DNA of 64,000 nucleotides from Neoconidiobolus thromboides FSU 785 (Eukaryota; Fungi; Entomophthoromycota), in assembly GCA_025603075.1 (NCBI GenBank), contig MU626260.1:124001-188000 (forward strand), given 5' to 3'. Every line of letters begins with the position of its first letter. The first letter of the stretch is position 1. Below, in pieces: positions 44,090-49,962 of this stretch. The notes under the pieces are model-generated. The model was given only the letters and a program-made list of their open reading frames with translations. It searched no databases and was not told where the DNA came from. A program made the position numbers and the translations under genes.

Positions 44090-45958
44090 ATGCAAAGAGG
44101 TATTATTTATTATTTATTGTATTTTGAAATTTATTGATTGAATATCCAGGAATGCCAAACAAAGCGAAAAACCAGGCACCAAAAGGTATTTAAAAGCATT
44201 TAATTCTGCATCATCTATTTGTTAATACTATTTCAAAAGCCAATTGGTCTTCTGTCATTAACCAAGCCAATTTACGGAATAGTCCACAAGGGTATGCAGC
44301 TCAATTACAGTCTTATTCAGATACTTCCATCAATAGTGAATTGAATAAAAGTAAAGAAACCAATGGAGTTCATACTGATTTACCAAACGCCCAAGCTTAT
44401 AGACAATCTAGAGTTACAAGGCAAGAAGACTTTCCTGCTTTACCGTTGCAAAGAGCTTCGTCCCATCAAATTCAACCTAAACCCAGTGGTATGATTAATG
44501 ACAAAACCACTCCAACTCAAAAACAGTTGAATAACTCGAATATGATAGCTACTACATCGGAACAAGGGGGTAAAAGTAAGATTTTTATTGTTTTCAAATG
44601 AAATGAGTATCAAATTCATCATAAACTAGATACACGTAATCAACCACGGTATACAATAGAAACTCAAGCTCAGGTAGAAAAAAAAGAAACTTGTTAAATT
44701 TTATTATAACTTATTAACAGATACATAATTCAATAGGGGCAAAATAAACAGAAGAATAATAAAAAAGAAGTTATTAAGGAAACACTGCCACTAAAGCCTG
44801 AAGAAAAGTATGGATTACCAAAAATTTTAGATATTTTATATAATAAAAAAGAAAAAACAGAATATTTTTTGGCTACTGGGATACCCCTAGAATCCGCTAA
44901 ATTAAATTTAAATGATCCTAGGTAAGTTTCAACAATAATAATAATTTTATATAAAACTTATTAATACTATCTTATTTTAATTAGACCCATTTTTAATACA
45001 TTACTATCTCCTTGGATATTAGAACCTTCTACTTATAGCGGTTTATCTAAAATACCGGATAATGAATTACCTAAAGATTTTCAAGATAATCATCCAATGG
45101 TATCTCCAATGAAACATATTAAAAGATATAAAGATCGAACATTATTTTATATATTTTATACGATGCCAAGAGATTTAATGCAAGAAGGAGCTGCTCATGA
45201 ATTGTAAGTATTTGAATTAATAACAATAATAATAGATTTAATAATAATAAATTTAAAGGCATAGTCGAGGTTGGAGGTATCATATTAAACGTCAATTATG
45301 GATGATGCGAGTCGAGAATAATGAACTAACAAGTCGACAAAATGAAAATTCAGACATATTTGAAGTGTTTCATCCAAGGAATTGGGAAACAAGAATTGAA
45401 AGGGTAGCTTTTGGTAATGATACATTTGAAACAAGACAAGTGTATAATATCAATCAAATTAGTTATACTAAAGAACAAGTGATCAATAACAATAATCATC
45501 ATTTAGTTGATAATACATATGGTCCCATAGGAAATCCAAATAATCCATCGAATGGACCAATGGGAGTTATGAATCCACAACAGATGTATAAACAAAATTT
45601 AGCTATGGGATACAATCCAAATAATAATACAACAATAACACCAGGACATATACATGGAGGAGGAGGAATGAATGGAAATTATTTACCACAAGCTCATTTA
45701 AATCTAGGATTAAATCAGCAACAAGTTCAAATGATGAATCTACAAGCTCATCATTTACAAAATAATCCTCATTTACATCAACAACAACAAAACCTTCCAC
45801 CTCAAATGTTTAATGCAAATATTCATCCCAATATCAATAATCCTCATTTTAATCCAAATCAATTGCAATTGAATCAAGCTTATCATTTGCAAAATATTCC
45901 TCAACATATGTTACCTCATAATCAACATCATAATCAATCTAGAATGAAAGATTATTAA
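44090..45958 (+). CDS. NOT2: CCR4-NOT subunit Not2-like (NOT-box) with a long N/Q/H-rich C-terminal extension
   Basis: KYGL...LATG...LNLN, LLSPW, TLFYIFYTMPRDLMQEGAAHEL, RGWRYH...LW; multi-exon, start inferred. Confidence 0.75.
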
Positions 45959-46261
45959 ATATGAAAGCTGAAGTTTTATTGTCGTAGGAATTAAATTTTT
46001 TATAATTTGTTTTATGTAAAATAAGGTTCATTTTTATTTTATTTTTTATTTTATTTTTATGTTTGTTATAATTAAATAGTGTGAGATATTTGTTATGCTA
46101 ATAGGCAAAAGTTTTATTATTTAATACTATTAAGATAAAGTTTTTTTTATAAATATTAAAGCTTAGATTTTATTTTTATTTTTATTTTTAAATATTAATT
46201 TTACCCTTCCCTTCCCTTACATTACATTACATTAAATGAAACTCTAAAAAGCATCAAAAAC

Positions 46262-47706
46262 ATGAATACTTTATTTTTTGAAATTTTTAAGTACTTTAAT
46301 CAAATGGGTAAATTTTCCCACCCTTTTTAATAATCTACAAATAAATACTAACTATATCATATATTGAATTAGAAAAAGATATATTAGTTGATATTAGTAA
46401 AAAACTACAAAGGATACAATTAGTAAATGAAGAGATTAATAAAGATAAATTACATTCTAATAGTATAAAAAATAAGAGCAACAATAAGAATAAAACTAAA
46501 AAGAGGTATATACGAGCCAAATGATAAATACAAGAGACTTTATTTTAATTTTATTATATAGCACCAAGGATATATTAATCAGTGTAGAAAAATTAGAAAG
46601 TATAAGAGGTAATAATTAATTTAATTACTTACTATTATTGAGATGATGATTCCTCAGATAAAATAAATCTCAAATTATCTGATAAACAAGAATATGATGA
46701 CCATTTGGTAACTAAGTAGGTTATAAAATATTAAAATTAAATAACACCATTTTAATACTTAATAATTCTTTAGTTTATTAATCATTATGAGTGCATAGTT
46801 TATTAATGTATTCTTTATTAAATGAAGGATAAGTTAAATATTCAATTTCCAATTAAAAAAGAAAATGAAGGAAATGAAGAAAACAATTTTAATAATCAAG
46901 TAAGTTGGTTCATTTATTCGACTTTTGTTTTATTTATTAAACAATAATTTAGAATAGCAAAATAAAGAATGAACAAGACATATTCATAAAAAGTAATTCA
47001 ATGACTATCATCTAAAAATTAAGTATTAAACAACTCATTGAACTTAGCTCCCATATCCGATCCAGCCTCTCAACTGTTATTATTAAGACAAAGATTAGAA
47101 CAAATAGAAATTGAAGCTAACTTTTCCTCTCTTGAAATGATTAAAGTGAATAATTACAAATGTCATAAAATATTAAAAAGATATTAATATTCAACTTAAT
47201 AATAATAGGAAACAGTCTACCCAGATTATAAGAAATTATCTAGAAGTTATAAAGATGGCATGAAATTATATAGTTATATTAATGGTAATATTCAGGCTAA
47301 ATATCAAGACAATACTATTCAAATTTGGTTTCCTAATGGGGATTGGAAAAAGGTAATTGGATTTTTATTATTATTATCATTATTATTGTATAAACATATG
47401 ATGTATTTTTACTTTTATTTATTATTTTTATTTTAATTCTATATTTAATAGTTAAAAGATAATTATCTATACTATTATTATTCTAAAAATCAAGTGACTC
47501 AAATAAGTCATTGTAATGGAACAAATGAATTTCATTATCCAGATGGTACTATTGAACGTTATCCACCTAAAATGAAGAATAGTGATATAAAATCCACCTT
47601 CATTAAATTAGAGATTTGGTTACCAAATAATACTTATAAAAGAATTATTTGTAAATCAAAATTTAATAATAATAATAAAGCTGGTGGAGATTTAGAAGTA
47701 AGTTAA
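46262..47706 (+). CDS. Small (~300-330 aa) protein ending in a SAS-4/CPAP-type TCP10_C (G-box) domain
   Basis: The last two exons (47209-47352, 47452-47706) translate to ETVYPDYKK..YKDG..YINGN...TIQIWFPNGDWKK|LKDNYLYYYYSKNQVT...GTNEFHYPDGTIE...EIWLPNNTYK. The 5' exon structure is less certain. Confidence 0.7.
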
Positions 47707-47729
47707 AATAGAATATAAATAGAATATAA

Positions 47730-47760
<31 letters not shown>
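47706..47760. repeat. AT-rich simple repeats: (AAATAGAATAT)x2 followed by an (ATA)n microsatellite
   Basis: Read directly from the sequence, between two convergent genes. Confidence 0.8.
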
Positions 47761-47940
47761 CAATTTAATTAGGAATTTTATCCCAATATAACTTATCCTA
47801 ATAGGCCGAATAAACATTAACTTTTAATTTATTTAATAAAAAAATTTAAAAAATAAAAACAAAAAATTTAAAAAAAACTAAATTTAGATAATATTAATAA
47901 TTTAATTTAATTAAAAAAAATCTTCTTAATTATATTTAAA

Positions 47941-49962
47941 TTAACTCTCTTGATCTCTTAATTTTGATTTTTCAAATAATTGATTATCAATTAAACATTT
48001 GAATTTTTCAACTTCTTTTTTCAGTTCCATTATGTTTTCATCTTTTACTATTATTTCTGCTTGACTTTGATTTACTTTGTCCGTTAAGTTTTGATTCTTA
48101 GATTCTAACTCATTAACCTATTTAGAATAAAAAATAAAAAATAAATTAATTAAAATAAATTATAATCAAAAAATATTAAATTAATTCCTTACCTTTAATA
48201 ATAATTTTTGACGTTCTTCTTCCTTTTGTTTCATTTCAATACTAACTTCTAAGTTCAAATTCATCTGTTGTTGATTTTTATCTTTTTCATTTTGATAAGC
48301 TTCCCATAAACTGTTAATACTATCCAACTCGCCCGTATTAAAACAATTAGCCCTAAGAATAAAAGAAATAATAAATTAATATTTAACTCGTAATGTTTGA
48401 ATAACTGATAAATCAATATTTACCATTCGATTGATTTTGAATTGACTGTAGCTAATGTCTTTTCCATCTCTTCAATATAATCTTGTTTTCTTTTGATTTT
48501 ATTTTCTAAAGATAAATAAGATTCCTTTAATAATAAATGCTGAGATTGGGAATAGTTAATGAATTCTTTTTCTTTTTTTAATAAGATATATTGTTGTTCT
48601 AATTTATTATGCTTTTCTTTTAGAACTAATTCAAAGTTTATTAAGATGTTGTTTTATTGTTATCTAAGTTTATGTTTACCTTGATACTCTTTAACAACTA
48701 ATTCCAAAGTTTTTGGATCATCGGAATCTACTTGTGTATTTTGATTCTTTTCTAATTCTAGATTAAGTTTCATTAATTTGGTTATTTCTTCCTCTTTTGA
48801 AATGAGTTGAGATTCTAGATTATCAATCTGTAGTAAATTATCAATTATTATATAAATTAAACTATTTTAATAAGTCACTTACTTGTTCTTTAAACTCTTT
48901 ATCTTTATTATTTAGTTGTAAATTTAATAACTCAATATTTTGTTGGCTTTCTTTTGATTGAATTTCTAATATAGAAATCGTATGTTTTAGACTTATAATT
49001 TCATCTTTTAACTGATCTATTATTATTTTATCATTTTTACTATTAACTTTTTCCTAATATTTACTTATTAATATCACTTTGTCAAAATAATAAATTATTT
49101 AATACCTGTAAACTTTCAACTTGTTTCTTTAATTCGTTAATTTGTTCTTCCAATTTTTCATTATTATTTTGTTTTTCAGTTATCTGTTGTTTCAATTGCT
49201 TTTAAAAAATTAATAATTTGAATAATAATAAGTATTAGGAGTTTAAACTTACATTAATACAATACTCTTTCTCATCAATTTGATTCTGTAATTTTTCCAA
49301 TCTCCTTTCACTAGTTAATTTTAACATTCTGTAATCTGTGGTTAAACTAGTATAATTATATTTCATTTCATTATAATCTAAAGATAGCTTTTTATCTAAT
49401 ATAAAAACAAAAAGTTCCTATTAATGATTAATTTTCAAGTAATAATATTAACTTACTTTGCTCAACGATTCCTTCTGGGTAAATAGGTACCATAGCTTTA
49501 ACTTGTTCTTTAATTTTTTGTAATTTATCTAAGTCAAAGATAGATGACTATTAATGATTTAGCTTCAATTACTTCAAGCTACTTAATAAAAAAATAGCTT
49601 ACAAAACTTTGATCTATTTAAATACAAATGTTAAAATTCAAATCGCAATTTAAAAATTTAATATTACCTTTTACATCCTGAATACTCCCTTCTTTGTCCC
49701 CAGAATCCAACTTTAAAAAATTATTACCATGACCACTATCCTAAAATATCAACTTAATCTTCCCTCTCGTTTTCAAAATATAATTTATAATTCTCACCTT
49801 ACTTCTCCTTTTACCACTCATATCCGAACAAACAGTGATATCATCTCGATCAGTTACTTCAGAATGTTGACTTCCCCCTTTATTACTATAAGCTAAGGAT
49901 AAATGTGATCGACTACTCCCTCCTTGACTCCTAATCCTCTTTTTAGCTCGATTAGCAAACAT
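47941..49962 (-). CDS. Long coiled-coil protein of unknown function (multi-exon)
   Basis: Ser/Arg-rich disordered N-terminus followed by continuous heptad-like K/E/Q/L-rich exons separated by GT-AG introns; stop at 47941-47943. Confidence 0.75.

Follow-up and report, generated by a model that had tools for sequence, protein, structure and literature searches.

A gene of the non-flagellated fungus Neoconidiobolus thromboides FSU 785 (Entomophthorales) encodes, in its C-terminal ~145 residues, what is very probably a G-box (TCP/Tcp10_C domain) like that of SAS-4/CPAP/CENPJ, in a shortened and divergent form. Taken as a whole, the locus is on balance best explained as a transcribed gene for a reduced SAS-4/CPAP-type G-box protein, which would descend from SAS-4 and serve as an adaptor or scaffold at the nucleus-associated microtubule-organising centre (MTOC). 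The gene lies in scaffold MU626260.1 of assembly GCA_025603075.1, within the 64-kb stretch of DNA that we analysed as a whole (the window, to which all positions below refer), which has a G+C content of 27% and in which introns are short. Contamination was ruled out, as the locus as fetched is found letter for letter in the window and the 339-kb scaffold around it has the same composition. A flagellated chytrid was likewise ruled out as the source by the identity of the organism, in agreement with an initial annotation of this DNA that had supposed a non-flagellated fungus. Within the 64-kb window the gene has no paralogues, with tblastn matching the G-box gene alone.

The JGI annotation places two genes on the + strand of the locus, at 46262–46947 (131 aa) and 47260–47820 (128 aa). 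The second corresponds to GenBank KAI9298941.1 (P0001), a "hypothetical protein" of 128 aa, which is the spliced product of the three 3' exons and starts at an internal Met at 47260. The peptide quoted in the initial annotation is encoded exactly as written by exons 8 and 9 (Table 1), which are joined across a GTAATT...AG intron (47353–47451), with a further intron (47698–47772) leading to the last exon, and P0001 uses both of these splices. Of the limits first proposed for the gene, 46262–47706, the first is an ATG, at which the upstream JGI model begins too. The second falls short, as the last exon had been missed and the gene stops at 47820.

The upstream JGI model continues past caaGTAAGT (at 46900), the best donor of the locus, to an intron stop at 46947, while the start Met of the downstream model removes 17 residues whose counterpart in CPAP is the beginning of the TCP domain. 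Because G-box homology reaches 17 codons 5' of this Met and ends at a good acceptor (47208), one or more upstream exons are implied. Using dynamic programming we obtained a phase-consistent splice path through linking exons between the two models, which runs from exon 5 to exon 8 with introns of 53, 55 and 63 nt. Furthermore, in the interval between the models (46948–47208) RNA run X5, which is from the source organism, contains 7 of 19 sampled words (0.37). The share expected with exons 6 and 7 alone present in RNA is 0.34, that for an untranscribed interval 0 and that for an unspliced one near 1. Transcription, on which the initial annotation had made its proposal depend, was evident across the locus as a whole (46200–47800), with RNA-type runs containing 0.28–0.46 of the sampled 31-mers. 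Given the splice path, the homology extension and the RNA word share, as distinct from junction reads, we consider that the two JGI models probably represent one predicted gene of 10 exons and nine short introns, coding for 312 aa and ending at its C-terminus exactly as P0001 does. The exons of this merged model have a G+C content of 0.24 and the introns of 0.165. A protein of ~300–330 aa, as suggested in the initial annotation, is plausible on this model, although JGI has separate 131-aa and 128-aa models. The current GenBank/JGI annotation of the locus (46262–47820) is corrected by the present analysis.

Table 1. Predicted exons of the merged gene model, given in window positions.
Feature	Positions	Strand	Encoded sequence	Features and basis
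Exon 1	46262–46307	+	MNTLFFEIFKYFNQM	Phase 1; ATG shared with upstream JGI model; ORF and donor tggGTAAAT at 46308
Exon 2	46373–46505	+	EKDILVDISKKLQRIQLVNEEINKDKL...	K/N/E-rich, helical-looking; frame-consistent splice path; no Pfam family at E ≤ 10
Exon 3	46562–46608	+	STKDILISVEKLESIR	Inferred from splice path
Exon 4	46643–46707	+	DDDSSDKINLKLSDKQEYDDHL	Inferred; preceding intron only 34 nt, least certain boundary
Exon 5	46828–46899	+	DKLNIQFPIKKENEGNEENNFNNQ	Ends at caaGTAAGT, best donor of locus
Exon 6	46953–46992	+	NSKIKNEQDIFIK	Phase 1; linker between JGI models; dynamic-programming path and RNA word share
Exon 7	47048–47145	+	TPISDPASQLLLLRQRLEQIEIEANFSSLEMIK	Helical segment directly before G-box; highest G+C of locus (0.33); no Pfam family
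Exon 8	47209–47352	+	ETVYPDY...NGDWKK	Start of G-box, aa 168–215; F208 at 47329–47331; PDB phmmer and Pfam Tcp10_C (19.1 bits)
Exon 9	47452–47697	+	LKDNYLYYYY...GGDLE	G-box strands; YYYY strand with Y223–Y225 at 47473–47481, Y244, E250 at 47554–47556, then EIWLPNNTYK
Exon 10	47773–47820	+	EFYPNITYPNRPNKH	Last hairpin-like motif and stop codon; from P0001 sequence

The homology to the SAS-4/CPAP G-box that the initial annotation had recognised was borne out by searches of sequences of known structure. Using phmmer against 177,635 PDB sequences, with exon 8, exon 9 and P0001 as queries, we found that the significant matches were to CPAP/SAS-4 G-box chains only, and this domain (PDB 4BXP, 4BXR and 4LD1 from zebrafish; 4BY2 and 4MPZ from Drosophila) is thus both the best and the only significant PDB match. 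The five best matches of P0001 were all chains of this kind (E 1.4e-6 to 1.4e-4). Exon 8 (48 aa) matched Drosophila Sas-4 with an E-value of 1.2e-8 and zebrafish CPAP with 2.5e-5, and exon 9 (80 aa) matched CPAP/SAS-4 G-box chains with an E-value of 5e-3. Residues 7–47 of exon 8 align to residues 11–52 of the CPAP chain, with residue 11 being where the TCP domain of the crystal structure begins, and the in-register alignment covers zebrafish residues ~943–1040.

At the centre of this alignment, P0001 and zebrafish CPAP residues 969–1026 form a single in-register block of 57 residues with one gap and ~30% identity. Here TIQIWFPNGDWK is aligned with CPAP TVKVMFFNGDVK, YLYYYYSKNQVTQISHCNG with CPAP VIYYYAEAQTTHITYPDG, and YPDGTIERYPP with CPAP FPNNQTEKHFP, and the block also includes a feature that is not part of a repeat (YLYYYYSKNQVTQIS versus VIYYYAEAQTTHIT). 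The similarity fades past EIWLPNNTYK (compare EITFPDQTVK). Counted from the acceptor of exon 8 up to the stop codon, the G-box measures ~145 aa, short of the 188 aa of the zebrafish construct (residues 937–1124), and ~100 of the 145 residues are confidently alignable, while what would normally be the last third of the domain is either missing or unrecognisable; an earlier description of the domain as "half-length" was therefore roughly right.

In zebrafish CPAP the residues F978, Y994, Y996, H1003, T1005, F1015, Q1019 and E1021 contact STIL, the edge of the G-box binding a PRxxPxP motif of STIL/Ana2, and the substitutions F978V, Y994V, F1015V and E1021V cut STIL binding 8- to 37-fold (Cottee et al. 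2013, PMC3776556). When residues are numbered by reference to the E1021V mutant chain 4bxq (chain index + 932), four of these eight contacts are identical in the N. thromboides protein, F978 corresponding to F208, Y994 to Y223, Y996 to Y225 and E1021 (human E1235) to E250. Two more are conservatively replaced, F1015 by Y244 and T1005 by S234, while H1003 is aligned with Q232 and Q1019 with T248. The YYY strand and the glutamate to which the initial annotation had drawn attention are hence kept in register when P0001 is aligned to the published contact residues, and the four mutationally validated positions are all identical or aromatic-conserved. Judged from sequence, the putative proline-motif binding edge is largely kept. 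It can also be argued to have been under continued selection, since the contacts (4/8 identical and 2 conservative) are better kept than the rest of the aligned region, for which the identity is 30% overall.

Predicted structures gave a similar picture. For the exact P0001 sequence the ESM Atlas provides a model, with a pLDDT of 0.80 and a pTM of 0.75. The Atlas feature matches nearest to P0001 were Tcp10_C clusters, with scores of 0.89–0.91, and such clusters made up 22 of the best matches listed; from ~0.9 for Tcp10_C the feature score drops to 0.49 for MORN_2. Likewise, the nearest structural neighbours in the Atlas were Tcp10_C clusters, namely a 197-aa chordate cluster (TM 0.68) and an arthropod cluster that also carries Tubulin-bind_CPAP (TM 0.67), with MORN clusters reaching a TM of 0.50–0.54 only. 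AF2 run without an alignment produced a poor model (pLDDT 42), and Foldseek with this model placed four CPAP G-box entries within ranks 1–5, at a non-significant E of ~0.1. As a separate observation, 56 of the 100 nearest Atlas feature clusters have no Pfam family, and the best of these 56 (0.87) has Nucleocytoviricota members; G-box-like hairpin repeats may also be present in these giant viruses.

The initial annotation had looked to Pfam Tcp10_C (PF07202) for confirmation, and this was indeed the sole family matched by P0001 (E ≤ 0.01), but its score of 26.6 bits (E 4.7e-6) is below the 36-bit cut-off, and exons 8 and 9 scanned separately scored 19.1 bits each. Taken alone, this match is weak evidence for a G-box because the Tcp10_C model cross-reacts strongly with Rib "YPDG" repeats, with P0002, a bacterial LPXTG-anchored Rib-repeat protein of 1934 aa, scoring 126 bits. 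An origin of the domain by chance or convergence, as a beta-hairpin repeat of the MORN, Rib or WG kind ("x-Y-P-D-G-x") in an AT-rich genome with no homology to SAS-4/CPAP, would be in keeping with the sub-threshold Pfam score, with the short beta-hairpins and aromatic-P-D/N-G turns that the protein has in common with MORN and bacterial Rib repeats, with the presence of MORN clusters among its structural neighbours, and with the YPDGT of exon 9, for which there were 22 matches in one bacterial Rib-repeat protein (E 1.5e-10) and also a match to a MORN/Tcp10_C-like bacterial protein. We nevertheless regard such an origin as improbable, since the CPAP block is long, single and in register, includes non-repeat features beyond YPDG, and has no counterpart in MORN or Rib repeats. 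Moreover, no Rib or MORN chain was found among the PDB matches and P0001 has no Pfam match to MORN (PF02493) or Rib (PF08428), which speaks against the generic MORN-like repeat contemplated in the initial annotation. The N. thromboides protein is set apart from generic hairpin repeats by the length of the in-register block, by PDB matches confined to CPAP/SAS-4 and by the Atlas ranking, and its membership of the G-box superfamily is supported at the level of sequence.

Upstream of the G-box, the predicted N-terminal ~167 residues are of low complexity and K/N/E/D-rich, with heptad-like helical stretches as judged by eye. Scanning of the N-terminal exon pieces one by one, which has limited sensitivity, gave no Pfam family at E ≤ 10, including PF25779 Tubulin-bind_CPAP (PN2-3). 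The protein thus differs in several respects from SAS-4/CPAP proteins, which are ~900–1340 aa in length compared with 312 aa here (128 aa as annotated). The short part that precedes the G-box showed no PN2-3/A5N region for the binding of tubulin or microtubules, the G-box itself lacks recognisable distal strands, and, unlike the hosts of SAS-4/CPAP, N. thromboides has no centrioles. What it shares with them, besides the alignment, is the aromatic edge for the STIL proline motif, the microcephaly glutamate, and a helical segment immediately N-terminal to the G-box. In overall architecture it is also similar to mammalian TCP10/TCP10L, which are small and combine a helical N-terminal part with a partial Tcp10_C domain and no tubulin-binding part. 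Mammalian TCP10 genes are duplicates of CENPJ, and TCP10/TCP10L are homologous to the CENPJ C-terminus, so this likeness would reflect parallel reduction and not orthology.

Searches for closer relatives returned little beyond the protein itself. HMMER with the 80-aa exon 9 against 1.84 billion representatives gave P0001, two bacterial repeat proteins and one low-complexity match, a result that is uninformative on absence from other fungi because animal CPAPs were missed as well. A word-based homologue search with P0001 in a length window of 70–224 aa, which excludes full-length CPAPs, returned P0001 only, and a metagenome scan found no relative. In the literature we found no prior report of a Tcp10_C, CENPJ or SAS-6 protein in zygomycete taxa. 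Surveys have not found orthologues of CPAP, SAS-6 and CEP135 in fungi outside the chytrids and other flagellated groups, including in Coemansia, a zygomycete with a spindle pole body that contains a centriole-like ring (PMC6070874). Likewise, delta-, epsilon- and eta-tubulins are absent from zygomycetes (PMC5381371), and the mitotic organelles of relatives of Neoconidiobolus such as Basidiobolus have microtubules in them and are not centrioles (PMC6492006).

The most economical origin would be from the SAS-4 of a flagellated fungal ancestor, by vertical descent and with loss of the N-terminal two thirds. We consider vertical descent from an ancestral SAS-4 reasonably probable, although not demonstrated because no relative was found in other organisms. 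Alternatively, a G-box fragment could have been gained horizontally, from a donor such as an arthropod host or some other eukaryote, and have later adapted to the fungal genome. In favour of such a transfer, the gene looks isolated among fungi in the present searches, exon 8 has Drosophila Sas-4 as its best match, and N. thromboides is an insect pathogen. The sensitivity of the searches is, however, too low to call the gene isolated, and the whole product scores higher against zebrafish than against fly and has no clear arthropod affinity. As the base composition is also that of the host (24% G+C in exons), the nine short introns are of fungal type, and ordinary fungal genes flank the locus on both sides within the 339-kb scaffold, we judge a transfer very improbable.

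It is also conceivable, but in our judgement unlikely, that the gene is a true G-box relic with no centrosomal or spindle-pole role, fast-evolving and lineage-restricted, and either drifting to loss or re-used in some unrelated interaction between proteins, perhaps as a G-box-only product of 128–150 aa. The lack of relatives detected elsewhere in the searches made, the truncation of the G-box with loss of the tubulin-binding part, the two separate JGI models and the low-complexity N-terminus would all be expected of such a relic. Against it stand an ORF that is intact over up to 10 exons, the transcription of the locus, and the better conservation of the ligand-binding residues compared with the remainder of the domain.

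For the reduced SAS-4/CPAP-type protein that we favour, the following mode of action can be proposed. The G-box would fold as an open single-layer beta-meander, and its aromatic edge (F208, Y223, Y225, Y244 and E250) would bind the proline-rich motif of a partner, as CPAP binds STIL CR2. The N-terminal ~167 residues, in which PN2-3 is not recognisable, would probably serve in self-association or targeting only, and in keeping with the lack of a tubulin-binding part we propose an adaptor or scaffold rather than a builder of microtubule walls. The most likely place of action would be the nucleus-associated MTOC. By way of analogy, when fission yeast is made to express Drosophila SAS-4, this protein localises to the spindle pole body and co-precipitates with the conserved pericentrin Pcp1 (PMC6559791). 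A role of the N. thromboides protein at the spindle pole, for which this analogy speaks, is tentative, and it is more doubtful still that the Entomophthorales, which have neither flagella nor centrioles, continue to run a reduced STIL–CPAP-type module at their nuclear MTOC. The vestigial centriole module at the spindle pole body that was envisaged in the initial annotation is an attractive hypothesis. If such a module were still at work, the protein would be the first centriole remnant known at the molecular level from a fungus without flagella, and would open a direct way to study the replacement of centrioles by spindle pole bodies. A kept and expressed G-box with an intact partner-binding edge would offer a defined protein for localisation, deletion and pull-down experiments, with which the old morphological idea of a spindle pole body arising on a degenerating centriole would become testable. 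Should the protein be unrelated to the MTOC, it would still exemplify a delayed and piecemeal loss of the flagellar/centriolar toolkit.

The neighbourhood of the gene showed some further features. Its 5' neighbour, at 45302–45958, is a Not2/NOT2_3_5_C protein in the JGI models (PF04153) with a long N/Q/H/P-rich tail, and 300 nt separate the end of the Not2 gene from the start of the G-box gene. On the 3' side there is a convergent gene with short exons on the minus strand (47941–49962), for which the JGI model spans 48420–49493 and codes for 265 aa with no Pfam match on record. The last intron of the G-box gene has a G+C content of 7% and is mostly filled by a pure (AAT)n microsatellite (47729–47760), variation in the length of which would leave the protein unchanged.
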